A stretch of DNA of 62,109 nt, the filler included, from Platydemus manokwari (lineage: Eukaryota), in the NCBI GenBank assembly GCA_037951405.1. It is 5 parts of 5 records of this genome, joined end to end, with 100 filler letters (N's around TTAATTAATTAA, not from the genome) between each part and the next. Parts side by side here need not be neighbours in the genome. Positions count along the whole stretch, not along the records: positions 39,901 to 50,069 come from JBBMOY011161991.1; 4 more parts are not named here. One strand, written 5' to 3'. The notes beneath the pieces were generated by a model, which worked only from the letters and a program-made list of their open reading frames with translations, was not told where the DNA came from and did not search any database. Of this stretch, positions 39,901 to 50,069 are shown piece after piece. Position numbers and translations under genes: made by a program. The first letter of the stretch is position 1; each line of letters starts with the position of its first letter.

Positions 39901-40540
39901 AATACAATTATAAAAGTGGTGATAATTAGTGGACGATTGCTATAATTTCAGTCAGAACAGCACTTCAGAAATAGATTTAAGCAAAACAGAATTTCAGAAA
40001 TATTTTCAGTCAGAATAGAATTTTCAGAAACAATTGGAATAGATTTCTCAGTAGCAAGAAGATAAACGTATTTACTATACAGATAGACCAATTTCAGCAG
40101 AAAAAATAAATTAATATCAGCCGAAGAGAGTTCTTGATCGAGAAGGATCTTTGAACAACATTTGTCAGTAGAAATCAACAAGAGGTCAGGTTATTTTAAT
40201 TATTCGTTTAGAGTATTTATAGAATATTCGTGGACAGTGTTCCCGAATATTTGTATTTGTTGGAAGTGATTGCATTGAGCGTCCGTAACCCGTTTACGCA
40301 CGCTGACATTCTAGTATCGGCCAGCAATAGTTCCTCGGCCAGTGATTCAGATTGGTGAAGCAAACCAGTTCCGAATTTTTGAAAACCAGACAGAATTTTA
40401 TTAGGGGCTAGGCTCTTGATGTCTTAACTGAAAGTTGTATATACTGTTATATAAATATAACTTAGTGTGTAACTTTGTTTTGATTAGGAAGTTAGGTCAT
40501 TAAAGAGAATTGTTGCGTTCTACTCTCGGTAGACCCAATA
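39901..40540 (+). mobile_element. Partial LTR, same family as 6072-6917, truncated by the gap
   Basis: 40220-40540 is the diverged reverse complement of 6072-6435 (e.g. GAGCGTCCGTAACCCG, CTACTCTCGGTAGACCCAA). Confidence 0.75.
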
Positions 40541-41129
40541 CACATTTCCATGTTAATACCATAGATATTGCATTTTCAATTCAAATAAATTTAATTCACC
40601 ATGGCAACATAACAAATAACCATGGAAATTTATCATTATCAGCAAACAGATCAAATCAGAAATTGCACAAATATTTCATTACAAATACTGCATACTATAA
40701 TTTCAACACATTAATAAAGCCGCATACGCGTTCAGAAGCGTAATCTTCCTCCTCGCTCATAAGCACCAGTATTCATAATCAATTTAGATTACTCAGCAGT
40801 CGATTTCTGGACTATTATTTAACAAGGATTGTCATTCAAATCCATATCGAGCATTAATATAAATTAGTAAGCATTAATATGAATGTGCGGTGTCCTACAT
40901 TGATAGTGCCCAAACAGACGATTTATCATTTAACTTTCACTCTTATAAAATACATTTCTTAATATAAATTAACTGTTCGCCATATTTTCTTGAAACATTC
41001 ACCAGATAAGCTTCTGACCAATTGGTGATGTGCATCAGAAAGTATCAAAGTATCTTATTAACAGAACAATAAACAAGTTTGTGATTTTTGGTGATTAGAA
41101 ATTAGATTTTTATATCTAATTCAATTTTG

Positions 41130-42780
41130 AAGCCAAAACTGGAACGGTTTTCTTGAATAATAATTATGGAACAGATATATTGATCCATATCATCTTTCTT
41201 ATTGAAATGGAAAAAGGATTTTATGATTACCAAATCGAGATTATTATTGTGATTAGATAAGAATTTCCGTTGTTTTCAATTATTTCGAAATTGGTTTATG
41301 AGTGCATTAAGTGCCATCAAAAACAAAACACAAACTCGTAAATATAGTTTTTTTTTAAAATAAATGGAAACAATTAAATTCCAAACACATATACAATTAT
41401 TGTGATTCAAGCTAATGTATTTTCATAAGTCTTGATACGATCAGCATGTTTTCATAGGGAAAAAAAGAGAAATATTTGATTTGATTTATAAAATAGTTTT
41501 AACTTTATCGATTATTGATAAAATTGAACAGCTTTCGAATGGAGATTCGTCATATAAATATTATCAATGATAATTTATTTTCCGTATAATAATTAGAAAT
41601 CCAAATCTTGTTTGCAAATATTATTGAAGGCATATTGATCTGAACATGTAGATATTTTGAAATTACTGACACTTATAAAGGAGTCACGCAATATTAATAG
41701 AATATTTATATGGACAATGCTTTTATATTTATAATTCAAGAGTAATTTAAATAAAAATTATTCTCTAGAAGAATATTTGATTTCAATCATTTCTCATTTT
41801 AGAAATCTTTAGATTTTCTAAAATGTCGTCCTTTTCAAATTAACTCTTTAATTTATCCAGAAAATGAATTGATAGCTGTCCAGATTGACAGAAAAACAGT
41901 CATAATTTCCAGAACCTAATGTCAATGGTGATAAGCAATGCCAGTCATGGGCATCGATAATTCAGGTAATTCGTTGTTCAAAATTTTTAACAAAATACAG
42001 ATCGAATATAAACCATCTAGGGTTGAGACGGATTTTATTCTTACCATCATTTTTATCACTTTTAAAAAATTTTCGTTTTAATTTATTCGATAGTTCATTA
42101 ACATCTTCAATGTCACTAATGTTTCGAAATTGATTTTATTTCATTTTTGGAATTTATTTATATTTTCAAAATTAAATAAATCATCTCGTAATCTGTTCAA
42201 AACAAGCTAATTAGTTTAGATATTATAGCTCATAAATTGATTGTAATAACTTGCAGTGATTCGCTATATGGTATCAAGAATTTATATAGATGTTAATACT
42301 TCCAATTGGTATTTTTATCATATAATGAAAATCAATTGTCTATCGACAAATATAATTCTTTAATTTAAACTCTAAAATCTCATTTATTGATTTAATTCAT
42401 CATTTATTTTGATAAATATTGAAAAATAAGTTAGGAAATTTATCACATTTATTGATTATCAAGCTTAAAATTTAAATTATTAGTATTTTGATGCCTTTCG
42501 ACAAGCCATATAAGAAACGCTGCAATTTCCACGACCAATTTTTTTTACATTTTATATGGCAGGTATCCTTTATTGTTATGCATTTAGGAATGCACTCATA
42601 TTTATTGCAATCCACACCAAAGTTACCCAGATATCCGAATCCAACAATAATTACCAATAGAAACATGACATTGATCTGGAATAACAATCATGTCAAACAT
42701 ATTGATATTCAATACATTTATTATAAAATATTATATCAAAATATAATGCCATAATTATGAGATAAAAATAAAACATCATA
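41130..42780. repeat. Left arm of a diverged inverted segmental duplication (partner 46495-47655)
   Basis: Colinear reverse-complement blocks: 41130-41240/47540-47655, 41280-41335/47460-47515, 41470-41510/47300-47340, 41560-41660/47150-47240, 42600-42780/46495-46685. Confidence 0.85.
42480..42675 (-). CDS. Small secreted cationic Cys-rich (CX3C) peptide gene; frameshifted in an A8 run (pseudogene or sequencing error)
   Basis: Acceptor TTATTCCAG; signal-like MFLLVIIVGFGYLGNFGVDC, then NKYECIPKCITIKDTCHIKCKK. Removing one A (T8 at 42539-42546) continues IGRGNCSVSYMACRKASKY*. Confidence 0.6.
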
Positions 42781-43319
42781 AAATATTTATTTATTGATTT
42801 TTATATTTTAATTTTAATTTTAATTATTTAATATTAATAAATTAATGACGAGAAATGATAAATAATAAAGAAACTACATAAATAGTGCCCTTTAAAGTGG
42901 TTTTATTTTTTGTTATTTCCACTTTAATTTCCTTATCAGCATGCATTCAAACATGATATAAATATCCAATAACCACATTATGATGCTCATCACAAAATAA
43001 TATCTTATATACAAAGACGATTTATACTACAACGTGGGACCCATTTCTTACAGTTAATTTTCTCAATTGATATTTATCCTGAAATTCATATTATTTGATT
43101 TTATTAAAAATGACCAACACAAACAAAATATTTCATCGAAGATCAATTCTTGAAATGCTTACAAACCCTCATTATTGAATCTATGGGTATAGTTTTTGCA
43201 CTGATTTAGTCACACCGACATTCTTTAAGTGAAATCAATCATCCATTATTAAAATTAGAGAACTCGAAATCATTTCAAATTTACGAGAAATTTAATTAAA
43301 TAATCTAATAAAGAAATAA

Positions 43320-43372
43320 TCCAGATATCCGAATCAACACATAATTGCCAATAGAAACATGACATTAATCAA
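43320..43372 (-). pseudogene. Signal-peptide fragment of the same peptide family
   Basis: CCAGATATCCGAATC...CCAATAGAAACATGACATT matches 42627-42672. Confidence 0.7.
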
Positions 43373-43429
43373 TAATTACAAATTCATCATTTTATTTAAG
43401 AAATATTTTTAAATAATCAAAGCATTTTG

Positions 43430-43745
43430 TCACTCTTATTGATTATCAGGTTTGAAAATTAAAATTTTTGTAATTTTTTAAAATTATAATTTTTTAATTT
43501 AGAAATTTATAGTTTTTTTTAATTATTAAATAATCGAAATTTTCAATTTTTAATCGATAATTTACTAAAAGTTCAAATTGTTTTTGTTGCACCTTTTATT
43601 ACATCGGCTTCTCTTCTGCTAATTGTCAGCAAAGTAGTACTTTTACTATAAATAATGCAATCTAAATACCTTAATAATTACCAATAGAAACATAACATTG
43701 ATCTGGAATTAAATTCATATCAAACATATTTATATTCGATACGAG
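43430..43745 (-). pseudogene. Decayed tandem paralog of the Cys-rich peptide gene
   Basis: Same intron end and INVMFLLVII start, internal stops, residual CNKRC. Its 3' flank matches 42440-42480. Confidence 0.65.
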
Positions 43746-45409
43746 CAGATTCTTCACATTCTTTCTACCATTGAATATGACTAGTAAATGAAGTTTGAAT
43801 ATTTTATTGAATGTTTATTTTATATTGATATTTATAATATTGATTTATATAATATTGATTGATCAAAACGTGTGTTATTATTTTAAATCATTAGAATATT
43901 ATTTATATAATAGCTTTCATCTTAATATGATTCATTTCTAGGCTCCACTTCAGGTACACGTTTCATTCCAATGCAATTTTAATTTGAGAGCGTAGGTTTG
44001 TAAATAACTAACATTATAACAATGCTATGTTATCAAATCCAAAAATCTTCAACAACGAAGAAGACATTACTTATCATTCATAAATATTCATAAAATATTC
44101 TTTTTAAATACATCAACAAACACCGTTCATTTTTGATTTGTGTTAGATGGAATCATTCAAAGCCATTTTATAATTGGAAATTATTATTTGTATTTTACAT
44201 CGAGATGTCATTTTTATTATTGCTAGAAAATAGATTAACATAACTTGTAACGAAACGAACTATTAATGAGGGAGAATGACTTGAATAAATTTTCATAAAA
44301 TTATTTCATTACATTTATTGAATCGATATCTGTAACTTATGCCATTACACACAGTTGAAAAGAACGAATTTTCAATTTTAATTAACGATTTTCTAATTTG
44401 TTTTGTGTTTTTCTACAAATTCCGTAAGCAGGTTCATAAATAATGTTCACTTAATATATCCAATCAATGACTTTTATTTATTAGAAAGTCAAAATAGCCT
44501 GATATCGTCAACTGGAGTTCTTCATATACGTAAATATTTAACTCTAACAGATAGATAAATTTCTTTATTTAAATAAATGAGCTTTTATAATCAATCTGAA
44601 TTATATGACAGGGATTAGAGAAATAGATTATTACTTTATCAACAAAACGGCGTTACTAAACAATAAAACAGCCCGAAAAATGAATTCGATATTATTATTA
44701 AACATGTGGAATTTTACATAGATAGCTTTGAGTTCATGATGAGTATCGAAACAAACTGTGTAGAATTTCCCAAATCCAATTAATTGTCTCAAATTACTTG
44801 GACAAACATAATTATAATAATCCAAGAGAATTGAAGATATCAAATCCAACATACGTCTCAACACATACGTCTCAGCCCACTAATAGGAATATAACCAATT
44901 TTATATATAATTGTAAACACAAATACAATGACGTACATCTAGATTTAGGTGAATAGGTTTTTCAAATATATTTTATACAGACACTGTTATATTTTATTTT
45001 TAAAAAATTACCCTTTTCCATAAATACTAAAAATAATTTTCACCTTGACAGCAAGAGAGTATAATTAATAAGCAGGTCACTACTGCATCAACACGATTTC
45101 TATATCTGAATAATCTGATATATCAATTATTGTACATGAACTCAAATATAATAAATCTAATATAATAAATATAATAGTTCACATTTCCAAAGACCTGAGT
45201 TGAGGTTTGTCTAATTTTGTATGCGAGGAAAGGTTAATTGTTATATGAATGCAATCAATTTACCAAACAAAAAGGATGAAATTTTGTAATATGCACTTCT
45301 TGTTTCTTTGAGTCTCAACATCAGCATTCGTGACTTCACATCTTCTATGATACTAAACATATTTGATTTCATTTCAAAAAAATGTGTTAGATTCATCAAT
45401 TTTAGATCA

Positions 45410-45660
45410 AATTGAACATTTTTCGAAACATCAAAGGAGATTCGTCAGATAAATTTTATGAATGATAATTTATTTCCTGTAAGATAATTACAAATCATGT
45501 TTGTAAAACTGATTACTGGCAGATTGATCTGAATATATCAATATTTTGGAAATACTGACAATTATAATGGAGTCACACACCTCAAATATAGCATTTATAA
45601 TTCAAGAGAGATTCAAATAAATGTTATTCTTTATACGAACATTCGATTTCTAATATTTAT
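45410..45660 (+). repeat. Third, direct copy of part of the duplicated unit (41520-41790)
   Basis: Shared blocks GGAGATTCGTCA..AATGATAATTTATTT..TTGATCTGAA..GGAGTCAC..TTTATAATTCAAGAG. Confidence 0.8.
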
Positions 45661-46481
45661 AAAATTTATTCTTAACTCGAACTATTTGGACTGCCATGAT
45701 TCTTGATCGAATTAACAAATAATTCTAGTAGTGATTTGGTTATTGAACTGCAGTTTTGTGTAATGCCACATATCGCATTCTAAACAATTTCTGGTTAAAA
45801 TACTATAATTAAATTTATTTGAAAGGTTTTGAATGATTTGCATTTAGAGAATGTCGGTTTTACTAAATCGGTGTAATCATATTCATTAATATGGGTTTGA
45901 AAGCCTTTTAAGAATTGATCTTCGACCTCATATGTGCTGTATACCTTGATGAAAATCAAATAAAAATATTTTTAAGATAAATAATCATTTGGAAAAATAG
46001 GCGCGAGAATCGGATCAAGCTCTGTGGTAAATATCCTTTTGTAGTGTTATATCAGGTCTTATTTTGTGTTGAGCACGATTATTTCGATAATTTCATATTT
46101 ATATCATGTTTGAATACATGCTCATAATTTAGCTAAAAATTTAACAGAATTTTCACTTGATTGATAAGGAAACAATAATGAAAAAAAAACAAAATAAATT
46201 AAAAAATTTGAAGGCTAAGGTAATGATAAAGATGAATAGCAAATGATTAATACAAACAATTGACTGGTTATTTAAAATAGTTCCTTTGTTACTCATCATT
46301 CCCCGTGATTCATTTGCATATTAAATAATTAAAATAAAAATAAAATTATTAAAATAGTTAAAAAAAAATATTTAAAAAATTTCATTTATAGTTTTGTTTT
46401 AATCAGTGACGATCTAAAATTAAGTATAAATAATCAGTGAATAGCAGTGAATGACAATTGGTGAAGACATTTTAAATCATC

Positions 46482-46693
46482 ATGAATGTAAGCAAATATT
46501 TTATGATTTTTTATTTTTATCTCTTAGTTATGGCATTATATTTTGTTATAATATTCTAAAATAGATGTATTGAATATCAATGTGTTTGACATAATTGTTA
46601 TTTCAGATCAATGTCATGTTTCTCTTGGTAATTGTTTGTGGATTCGGATATCTGGGTAACTTTGGTGTTGATTGCAATAAATACGATGATTAA
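46482..46693 (+). pseudogene. Two-exon paralog of the Cys-rich peptide gene with a premature stop
   Basis: Exon 1 ATGAAT (46482-46487), donor GTAAGC, 119-nt intron, exon 2 from 46607: MNINVMFLLVIVCGFGYLGNFGVDCNKYDD*. Cys-spaced remnant CKILFQEKLECKL lies downstream. Confidence 0.7.
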
Positions 46694-47655
46694 TTTTATT
46701 TGTAAAATATTATTTCAAGAAAAATTAGAATGTAAATTAACTGTCGGATAAATTAAAAAGAAATATTTGAAAATGTGGTAAACGTAATGGTAACAGTAAA
46801 ATAATTCACAATTGCTATATGGCTTATAATCGATGATTTCAACATTGTATAGACACGATCTTTATCATTGAACCACAGACTACTTGAAATATTGACTGCA
46901 TAATTATGCTGAAATTACAGTCTACCGTCATCACTATTATTCTGTCAATCTTAAATGATCCCAATGTCTGACACATTCCAATTCATTTTAATTTTTTGAA
47001 TGATAGGGGATTGTAATCAAATATTCCTATCAGGAATTACATTGATTTATATCTCTTATAAATTATAAATGGAATATTTGACATGTTTTTCTAATAAGTA
47101 TACCATTAATGTTGTATGACTCTATTATAAATGTCAATAATTATAAAATATTTACATGTTCCGATAAATCTGCTGGTAATCCTATTTACAAACATGATTT
47201 GGATTTCTAATTATTTTACAGGAAATATATTATCATTCATGAAATTAATCGGACCATTCTCGGATGATTTTTCATGTCATGTTTAATTTGATGTATAATC
47301 GATAAAGTTAAAATTATTTTATAAATCAAATCAAATATTTTTATTTATTTTCCTATCAAATGATGCTGACACTAGCAAGCCTTATGAAAATCACAATAAT
47401 TGAGTATGTGTTTGGAATTGGATCTTTATCATTTATTTAAACAAAAACTATATTTAAGTGTTTGTGTTTTGTTTTTGATGGCTCTTAATGAACTTATGAA
47501 CCACTTTCAAAATAAAAGAACATTCGATAAGATTAAAAATAATAATCTCGATTTAATAATCATAAAATCCTTTTTCTATTTCGATAAGGAACATAACATG
47601 GATCAATATATCTTTTCCATAATTATTATTCAAGAAAACAATTCCAGTTTCAGCC
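46495..47655. repeat. Right arm of the inverted duplication
   Basis: See 41130-42780. Confidence 0.85.
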
Positions 47656-48129
47656 TCAATACACAACTAATTTGTAATGGCCAAAAATTTTACAAATTTT
47701 ATTATTTCATGAAATTTATACTCAAAGTAGTATGATACACCAGTCTCCGACGACAGATTTCGAACCTTCAGGTTTGAGGAAGCGAAATTCTAATAAAAGA
47801 GTACGCTTAAAAATGAACGAAAAAAAGTGCGAAATTTGTAACAAGTTGTTTTTAAAACAAGTTGTTTAAGAAACCATGAAAATCTTAAGCTCATATTAAT
47901 CAAATTAATATAAAATTTGAATTATAAGCCAAATATTTCTTCAGCAATTGAAGGAGGAATTCCGATATTTGATATTTATAAAAAGAAATCTATTAAAAAA
48001 AATCAATGCCAACTAAAGATGTCTGTGAGCATGTTTTAGAAGAAAAGGAAGAAATATTAAATATTATAATCAAATAATAAACAAAAGAAATGTGCCATTC
48101 ACATGCAAATAAATATTCTCTGAATCATC

Positions 48130-49051
48130 ATACTCTTTCTTTACTGCCTCGATCCGTCCTCAATTCCTTTTTTTGAAGTATTTTGAAGTTTTCTTCTTTG
48201 TTATTGCAAGTTCCTGTCCCTCTGACTTTTCTCCATTCGGGGCTTTCTTATTATTGCTTAAAATTCCTACGTTTTTTGAGATTTGTGTAATACTCTTTGT
48301 CTTAATGTCCTCGATAGTTATATCTTTTACAACTGATTATATTTGAACATCCTCTAGCTATATATCCATTTTTATGGCAGGTATAACACGTTACAACTTT
48401 TGATGTACGACGGTTTTGTGCTATATTACCTGGTTTGGTACAGTTCTAGCAATTTCTGGTCTCTTTTCTCTTTACCTGAACCTTCGGCTTATGATTAGGT
48501 TTTCGTCTTGATATCTAATCATCCGATATTACAGTACTCACTTTATTTACTTTACGTACTTCTTCTAACTTTTTTCTTACCGTCGTAATATTCGGCAATT
48601 CAACAATATCGTTCATTTTTATCTCTTTCTCGAATTCTGCATCCTCTGAGCAATGGATTGTCAGGAATGGCACAAGATCGTCTTTCGTTGTTTTATGTGC
48701 CATAATGTCTTCCGCCATCTGTTCAATTCTATCGAAGAAAACTTCGGCGGATTCAGATTCTCTTCTATATTGAAGAGCTCTTAGCCAATCCTGAGCCAAT
48801 GATCTCTTTTTTCCAAAGGCATTTCGCAATCTTTAGTCAAGCACCTTTGTTTCCTTCGGAACTGCCTCGTATTGAGCAATCATGTTCTGAACTAACAAAG
48901 CAATTACAACCAAATTGCTAATTGATTTGATTGTTTTACAGATATCAAAATATTGATTACTGCTTTTAATAAACTGTTCGATATCTTCACCTCATCTGTT
49001 CTTTTCGGGCGCAGGTCTACTAAAGATCACATCCATGTGCGTGGTTGCCAT
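48130..49051 (-). mobile_element. LTR-retrotransposon gag pseudogene with three degenerate CCHC zinc knuckles
   Basis: MATTHMDVIFSRPAPEK..GEDIEQFI... continues into ORF 48515-48829, then C*NCTKPGNIAQN, CYTCHKNGYIARGC and CKRYNYRGH*. In-frame stops present. Confidence 0.8.
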
Positions 49052-49839
49052 ATTATTAGCGACTACTTCACTTGTAATTGATGTTTCATCAGAAGAACCT
49101 ATTATATCGATTTTTTTAAATTCAAACACTTAATACATTTTTTTTAACAAAATATACATTATTTTCCAGAGATATTTGATTTTCATTTTTGATCAGAGAT
49201 AGTTAAAATATTAAAATATTTCTCTAATTATTTTACAAAAAATTTAAAATTATTTAAAATTTATTTAAAATTTAAAATATTTGCAATTATTCATTAAATA
49301 ACATACGATCATAATTATTGATTATTCGATCACATTGTACTCAGGACAATTAGATCTTCAACCTATGTTTCTTCTAGAAGAAAACAGTTATATAATTATA
49401 TAAAAGAGTTAACCGATAATAAATCAATATATTGACAGTATTAATTTCATAATCTTTAGATCATAAGCGTTGTAACCTGTATTTTATTAAACTGTGTTTT
49501 GGAAGTCGCTTAACAACTTATTATTTATTCGAATTAAGTTAGTTAAAAGCCTGAACTTGTGCCTTTATGGTTGACAAATTTTTAGGTCTCAAATATCTTT
49601 AAATAAATTAGAAGACTTTACAGTTCTCGTAATAAGAAAATATTAAAATATCAAATAATTTAAAATCAGTTAATAAAAAAACTTCAATTAGATACCTGGT
49701 TAAAAAAATTACAAAATCTTAAGTTTATCTTTTATCTCCCCACCAAGTACATCATATTTATAACAGATATAATTCCAAACCGAAAATAATCAATAAGTTA
49801 TAAAAAATTAAACTTTTACTAATAATATAAAAAAGAATA

Positions 49840-49965
49840 AATTGCGCTTTGTTTATATAAAATTAAATATATTTGATTACATATGTGTGTTTAAATTGAT
49901 TTATTGCCTCTTGACTTTTTAATTCGTTTTTGATGTGTGGTTTTTAAAACAATAGCGAATAGTTA
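49840..49965. repeat. Dispersed repeat; inverted copy at about 60160-60265
   Basis: TTTATATAAAATTAAAT...TCTTGACTTTT...TTGATGTGTGGTTTTTAAAA.AATAGCG is the reverse complement of CGCTACTATTTTAAAAACCACATATCAA...AAAAGTCAAGA...ATTTAATTTTATATAAAA. Confidence 0.7.
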
Positions 49966-50069
49966 TAAAATGGCTAGTGGAATGGAACACCAAATAAATC
50001 ATCAAATTTACAAAATTATCAATTTTTTAATCCCAGTATGCCCCACAGACCACTAAAAACTCAATCTAT

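Follow-up and report, generated by a model that had tools for sequence, protein, structure and literature searches.

Among the described peptides closest to the one considered here, neurotoxin B-IV is a helical hairpin of 55 residues with eight cysteines in four disulfides (PDB 1VIB; PMC6410017). Its activity depends on Arg-17, Arg-25 and an aromatic residue at position 30. The alpha-hairpinins are plant antimicrobial peptides with the motif C1X3C2X4-20C3X3C4, folded as a helix-loop-helix with disulfides C1-C4 and C2-C3 and with no more than two additional Cys close to the core; the authors who set out these criteria regard the motif as widespread and not diagnostic (PMC11591084). In the animal CS-alpha/alpha peptides, such as scorpion kappa-KTx, conotoxin vil14a and acrorhagin I, two CX3C pairs are able to cross-link two short segments with two to three disulfides, and a member with a short Cys2-Cys3 loop is predicted to be beta rather than helical (PMC11722136). 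The locus described here, a set of four copies of a leader-bearing segment, lies in a window of 62,109 nucleotides (nt), filler included, of DNA from Platydemus manokwari (assembly GCA_037951405.1), in which we analyzed the piece from 39901 to 50069 (JBBMOY011161991.1). An original prediction had seen in it a birth-and-death cluster of a secreted cationic peptide. Well-described clusters of small secreted cysteine-rich peptides contain several intact, expressed paralogs with conserved Cys columns, and the signal is better conserved than the mature part.

We consider the likeliest reading of this locus, held tentatively, to be a mostly dead local cluster of a small lineage-restricted orphan gene in which a single copy is open; the locus can be no more than such a cluster. 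Like taxonomically restricted birth-and-death clusters, it consists of local tandem and inverted duplicates, most of them pseudogenized, with a short leader-bearing product that has no outside homologs. It differs from the well-described clusters in having one open copy and no signal-specific conservation, and in being known from DNA alone. Thus the predicted birth-and-death history holds to the extent that there was local duplication followed by decay, leaving one open and three dead copies, and that the open copy reads as a small secreted lysine-rich Cys peptide; the six-Cys framework and the signal-specific conservation that were part of the same proposal do not hold.

The case for a gene is made by the open copy, copy A (Table 1), which was read in frame as assembled and unedited. 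Its open reading frame (ORF) runs for 64 codons without a stop in a piece of 26% GC and reads as a hydrophobic leader of ~13–17 residues, the array C-X4-C-X3-C-X6-C-X3-C and a 22-residue, Cys-free, lysine-rich tail. The h-region of the leader comprises 12 uncharged residues after the Met, at least eight of them strongly hydrophobic; by eye, a basic n-region is lacking and no small-x-small site stands out. The mature peptide of 41 residues and six Cys proposed originally requires a change of frame, whereas unedited copy A is an unbroken five-Cys ORF. Both frames are open over the relevant stretch and the sequence therefore does not say which one is used.

We estimated chance rates from shuffles for the leader core and from Markov-simulated 10-kb pieces for ORF and motif features. 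The motif CX3C-X4-20-CX3C (hereafter the four-Cys motif) has a single stop-free match in the piece, at 42594 on the minus strand, and alone it arises in 2.2% of simulated 10-kb pieces; Met-started hydrophobic leaders are expected by chance 3.6 times per 10 kb. The conjunction of a Met-started leader with an in-frame, stop-free four-Cys motif is present once in the piece and in 0 of 1500 simulated pieces. The features of copy A are weak singly and not weak jointly. Copy A also has a GC content of 0.30–0.36, compared with 0.04–0.20 in its flanks, and coincides with the GC island at 42481–42700, one of only five islands in the piece that reach 0.33 or more. Given that the conjunction is missing from all 1500 simulations and that copy A sits on a GC island, the likeliest explanation is a small gene that is real or was so until recently.

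It is possible, but doubtful, that the locus is instead a non-coding segmental duplication in AT-rich DNA and the copy A ORF a chance reading on a GC-richer patch. Such a reading would sit well with the frequency of the four-Cys motif given above and with the density of Cys, since five in 22 stop-free codons are found in 21% of the simulated pieces, and with the occurrence of chance ORFs of 71–111 codons elsewhere in the piece, one of them antisense to copy A itself. It would also account for the lack of a comparable ORF in three of the four copies, for the core block being as well conserved in its non-coding half as in its 'coding' half, for other equally conserved blocks of the duplication that are demonstrably non-coding, and for the absence of relatives from the databases and contig collections searched. 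It does not account for the leader and four-Cys conjunction, for ORF bounds that match those of a sharp GC island, or for an acceptor-like AG, an ATG and a downstream AATAAA that follow one another in the expected order.

The remaining copies show how the cluster has decayed. The 24-nt leader core occurs at exactly four sites in the piece, with none expected from shuffles. The copies had been placed at 42480–42675 (minus strand, A), 43320–43372 (minus, C), 43430–43745 (minus, D) and 46482–46693 (plus, B), and these positions are right. The acceptor-like AG, the ATG and the hydrophobic leader align in copies A, B and D, and the AG is lost in C. Without editing, the leader is intact over 13 codons in A and B, interrupted in C and divergent after nine codons in D. 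Preserved in copy D are the upstream part, an acceptor-like AG, the nine leader codons and the 3' flank, which it shares with A at 75% identity (repeat D4, 42394–42489/43381–43476). Its first stop comes after 15 codons and eight stops lie in the span equivalent to the 64 codons of A. The mature part of D has been replaced or expanded by AT-rich tandem repeats (a 23-nt repeat at 43451–43518); one possible CX3C relic remains, in a frame that stops interrupt. Copy B lacks ~450 nt of A (42104–42596 in A versus the 44 nt of 46686–46730 in B), so that the Cys-rich counterpart is absent and the reading frame ends two codons past the last residue shared with A. Because D retains the acceptor-like AG, the start of the leader, the 3' flank and a possible CX3C relic, we take the layout of A to be ancestral and the loss in B to be secondary.

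Table 1. Features of the cluster (positions count along the window)
Feature	Position	Strand	Description
Arm A	41068–43241	−	Carries copy A; self-BLAST high-scoring segment pairs collinear with arm B; inverted repeats I1–I4, I7, I9, I13, I16 and I17
Arm B	45830–47706	+	Second arm of the inverted duplication (47706–45830 against arm A); carries copy B
Copy A	42472–42675	−	Exon-like segment after acceptor-like AG 42677–42676; 64-codon ORF, ATG 42666–42664, stop 42474–42472
Copy B	46607–46693	+	Leader segment after acceptor-like AG 46605–46606; 25-codon ORF from ATG 46616
Copy C	43314–43415	−	Short, interrupted and truncated leader fragment without acceptor AG; eight codons before first stop
Copy D	43381–43868	−	Full-length decayed tandem copy; basis: repeats D1 and D4 and self-BLAST
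24-nt leader core, A	42649–42672	−	
24-nt leader core, C	43343–43366	−	
24-nt leader core, D	43676–43699	−	
24-nt leader core, B	46610–46633	+	
Best-conserved block	42596–42793	−	Paired with 46489–46686; 198 nt, 91% identity, gap-free; 118 nt upstream non-coding and 80 nt leader
AATAAA hexamer	42448–42453	−	19 nt past the copy A stop, in the 3' flank common to D; weak, such hexamers being common in 26% GC DNA
Third partial copy of the downstream block	45231–45658	−	Direct to 41346–41792, inverted to 47015–47343; no leader; self-BLAST and repeats D2, D5, D6, D8, I5, I6 and I11

The anatomy of the duplication was worked out by self-comparison, using self-BLAST high-scoring segment pairs and a listing of direct and inverted repeats. 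The copies are not free-standing exons: A and B lie within an inverted segmental duplication of ~2.2 kb, whose arms are placed head to head, 2.6 kb apart, and whose outer ends correspond to the bounds of the original prediction (41130 and 47655). Between the arms are two tandem remnants, D and C, in the orientation of A (43314–43868). The comparison shows that inverted duplication of a unit of ~2.2 kb gave arms A and B and that D and C are tandem copies of the part of the unit that bears the leader. Of the four copies, three are dead, B by deletion, C by truncation and D by multiple stops and repeat expansion.

A downstream block of the unit, ~450 nt in length, is present three times, once without a nearby leader, and might be a repeat element in its own right. 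This block, the presence of both orientations of the copies within 6.6 kb and a possible decayed retroelement remnant next door (48071–49130, a by-eye reading only) are what would be expected if the unit were, or rode on, a mobile element, for example a non-autonomous one with a captured gene fragment, and if its copies had spread by transposition rather than by gene birth and death. We regard this as highly unlikely. Collinearity of the arms extends over 2.2 kb, as expected of a segmental duplication, and all copies are local; none of the arm ORFs gives a signal of a transposase or reverse transcriptase, terminal inverted repeats were not noticed at either end of the unit, and a scan of public contig collections, which hold little eukaryotic DNA, did not turn up the leader pattern.

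A number of observations, given in this and the following paragraphs, count against a gene in copy A. Five is an odd number of Cys, and the 21% of simulated pieces that reach the same Cys density have been mentioned above. By codon arithmetic, the excess of lysine is the default of AT-rich codons. The criteria used in simulating the conjunction of leader and motif were post hoc. In all four copies an out-of-frame ATG lies 5 nt upstream of the leader ATG (42670–42672, 43364–43366, 43697–43699 and 46612–46614) and, if transcribed, would compete with it.

The pattern of conservation between the arms points the same way. The arms were compared by block-wise alignment, a global MAFFT alignment having been rejected because its middle was mis-registered. 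Within the best-conserved block, 90 of 100 positions are identical in the non-coding half and 90 of 98 in the leader half; both halves are equally conserved, and the leader is thus no better conserved than the sequence that precedes it. The codon changes between the leaders of A and B comprise three synonymous and three non-synonymous substitutions. Judged from the equal block halves and these changes, the leader bears no sign of purifying selection. Two other arm blocks have 82–87% identity, and outside the best block the upstream and downstream parts of the arms are 74 and 75% identical, respectively, with many indels in both. Such patchy conservation could equally reflect gene conversion or uneven alignability. 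The two blocks of 82–87% identity share an ORF (41105–41275 on the minus strand and 47400–47732 on the plus strand, reaching 111 codons in B) that has 10 non-synonymous versus two synonymous changes, from which we conclude that it is a chance ORF and that these blocks are clearly non-coding. Long reading frames and high identity between the arms thus arise here without coding.

A conserved signal joined to a hypervariable mature part was the main argument advanced for a toxin or defense family. It does not survive this comparison: the leader matches the non-coding half in conservation and, of the other copies, B is deleted, C truncated and D decayed, so that what is seen is a single open copy and no signal-specific conservation. 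As the mature part is lost or decayed in B, C and D, the conservation of Cys among copies does not lend itself to judgment; with only A open, there is no paralog support for conserved Cys.

The good conservation of the leader in B, despite the loss of its Cys-rich part, would have a simple explanation if the segment were a short exon for the signal peptide in a gene of several exons. Such an exon would end at 42627 (46655 in B), before the GT at 42626–42625 (G|GTAAC, phase 1). The mature peptide of A would then be intron read-through, and the true downstream exons would be elsewhere, or not in the piece at all. Copies A and B have the same G|GTAAC site, and the similarity of C to A stops exactly there. 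It adds to the appeal of this scheme that, in secreted proteins of animals, signal-peptide exons are commonly followed by a phase-1 junction. Beyond the putative donor, however, the GC content stays at 0.32–0.36 for 130 nt, as in an exon and well above the clear non-coding flanks, the frame remains open and carries the four-Cys motif, and the conservation between A and B continues for 31 nt without a drop. Nor do the arms contain a conserved, open downstream exon, their sole shared ORF evolving as non-coding sequence. We therefore find a separate signal-peptide exon rather unlikely.

Comparisons with known proteins supply further points against a gene. Pfam gave nothing above noise for copy A, either as a 42-residue piece or as the unedited ORF, for copy B, for the antisense ORF or for 15 other open stretches. 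Searches of PDB chains with phmmer (E ≤ 10) returned no match to the 42-residue piece or the 64-residue ORF, 1VIB included, and a word-index protein search with copy A yielded no candidate. No relative was found in protein sets of 5.8 billion and 1.84 billion sequences, a weak negative given that sets of predicted proteins include few of the short ORFs of eukaryotes. Nor is any of ten ORFs of the piece present, by exact look-up, in a collection of 15 billion proteins. The exact leader pattern had no match in metagenome contigs, and the back-translated 64-residue ORF found no relative in metagenome, GTDB genome or IMG/VR contigs, collections that hold little eukaryotic DNA. The original prediction had looked to intact or expressed paralogs, and none was found in the protein sets and contig collections searched.

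The phmmer search of the 1.84 billion representatives did produce a single match, P0001, a protein of 755 residues from GCA_000189635.1, which we take to be Tetrahymena thermophila. We rejected it as a relative: it owes its score to seven very short matches, added together, to a motif of ~9 residues, and it also matches 26 unrelated Pfam families without any one stretch passing on its own. P0001 (GG662689.1, L001:3001-5268) is a leader-bearing protein with seven near-identical repeats of ~90 residues containing conserved Cys, an arrangement that inflates HMMER scores, and is unrelated to copy A. Under the standard code its gene does not give its product, and it fits the ciliate code.

Structure prediction adds a last point of this kind. 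From a single sequence, AlphaFold2 models the 42-residue piece with a predicted local distance difference test score (pLDDT) of 62.8, placing a helix in the leader only and none over the Cys part, and a Foldseek search of the PDB with this model gave no matches. For the 64-residue ORF, one of five models reached a pLDDT of 74, the others falling between 44 and 55; it has two long helices, one of which is the leader, and it retrieved generic helical hairpins only (E ≥ 4.2). The models suggest no consistent fold for copy A, their confidence being low and inconsistent, and the helical-hairpin fold first proposed is left unsupported by them and by Foldseek, which found no meaningful match.

How copy A relates to the described peptides can be judged from these results. 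With the nemertean B-neurotoxins (Cerebratulus lacteus B-IV and the beta-nemertides) it has in common that it would be small, basic, secreted and cysteine-stabilized, features that are predicted in the case of copy A. Kinship with B-IV, which had been suggested, finds no backing in five Cys against eight, in the lack of a PDB match at E ≤ 10, 1VIB included, or in the Foldseek result. The resemblance to alpha-hairpinins is formally correct: the CX3C-X6-CX3C array with one Cys four residues before it constitutes a '4C+1' pattern in a small cationic peptide. It goes no further than the pattern, since there is no sequence similarity, the fold is unsupported and the motif is itself non-diagnostic. 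The alpha-hairpinins are, moreover, a plant family whose members are usually cut from larger multi-module precursors, whereas copy A is a single short leader and peptide. The CS-alpha/alpha peptides provide the nearest functional analogy, two CX3C pairs being present in both. Here too there are differences, as copy A has no sequence or fold match to them, its loop is only six residues long and the 42-residue model has no helix over the Cys part.

If copy A is the surviving member of a mostly dead cluster, its product can be pictured as follows. Translation, now or recently, would begin at ATG 42666, and the hydrophobic N-terminus of 13–17 residues would act as a cleaved secretory leader. The remaining lysine-rich peptide of ~45 residues may be stabilized by disulfides between the two CX3C pairs and would act extracellularly, binding membranes or surface targets as small cationic Cys peptides generally do. 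The acceptor-like AG upstream of the leader could be a cis- or a trans-splice site, or it could be only part of a 5' untranslated region. A role in mucus, defense or predation is pure conjecture.

A stronger version of this proposal is that copy A is an expressed member of an undescribed family of secreted, CX3C-stapled cationic peptides confined to one lineage, with intact paralogs elsewhere in the genome, and that the locus is the decaying edge of an active gene family for defense or predation. We think this quite unlikely. Were copy A expressed and its relatives intact, it would represent one more orphan family among the lineage-restricted Cys peptides of invertebrates or protists, and the locus would also be a small example of gene turnover by combined inverted and tandem duplication. 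The value of the present analysis is mostly corrective: the picture of a conserved signal and hypervariable mature part, the six-Cys framework and the likeness to B-IV all fail, and what is left is one orphan ORF with above-chance features.

The piece as a whole looks like AT-rich eukaryotic DNA. Rfam and tRNA scans of it gave no match of either kind, a bacterial promoter scan, irrelevant for eukaryotic-type DNA, stayed at chance level, and reading the piece with the ciliate genetic code produced no convincing long ORFs. Beyond arm B lies the largest of the GC islands in the piece, at 48071–49130 (minus strand), where the GC content reaches 0.38 and several short stretches are open. By eye, this segment gives the impression of a decayed capsid (gag)-type protein of a retroelement that has a degenerate zinc-knuckle-like motif and is interrupted by several stops and frame changes; neither Pfam nor a word search with this gag-like stretch found a match. 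Within arm A, a short open stretch at 41906–41965 (plus strand) is flanked by AG and GT inside a GC island (41831–42060). It resembles a micro-exon and is not conserved in arm B; a kringle-like identity considered for it was abandoned, as neither Pfam nor the PDB supported it. Outside the duplication, two adjoining GC islands (≥0.33) extend over 40081–40940 and contain ORFs without a Pfam match. Close to the start of the piece, positions 39942–40035 are occupied by a 29-nt tandem repeat of 3.2 copies with 77% matches.

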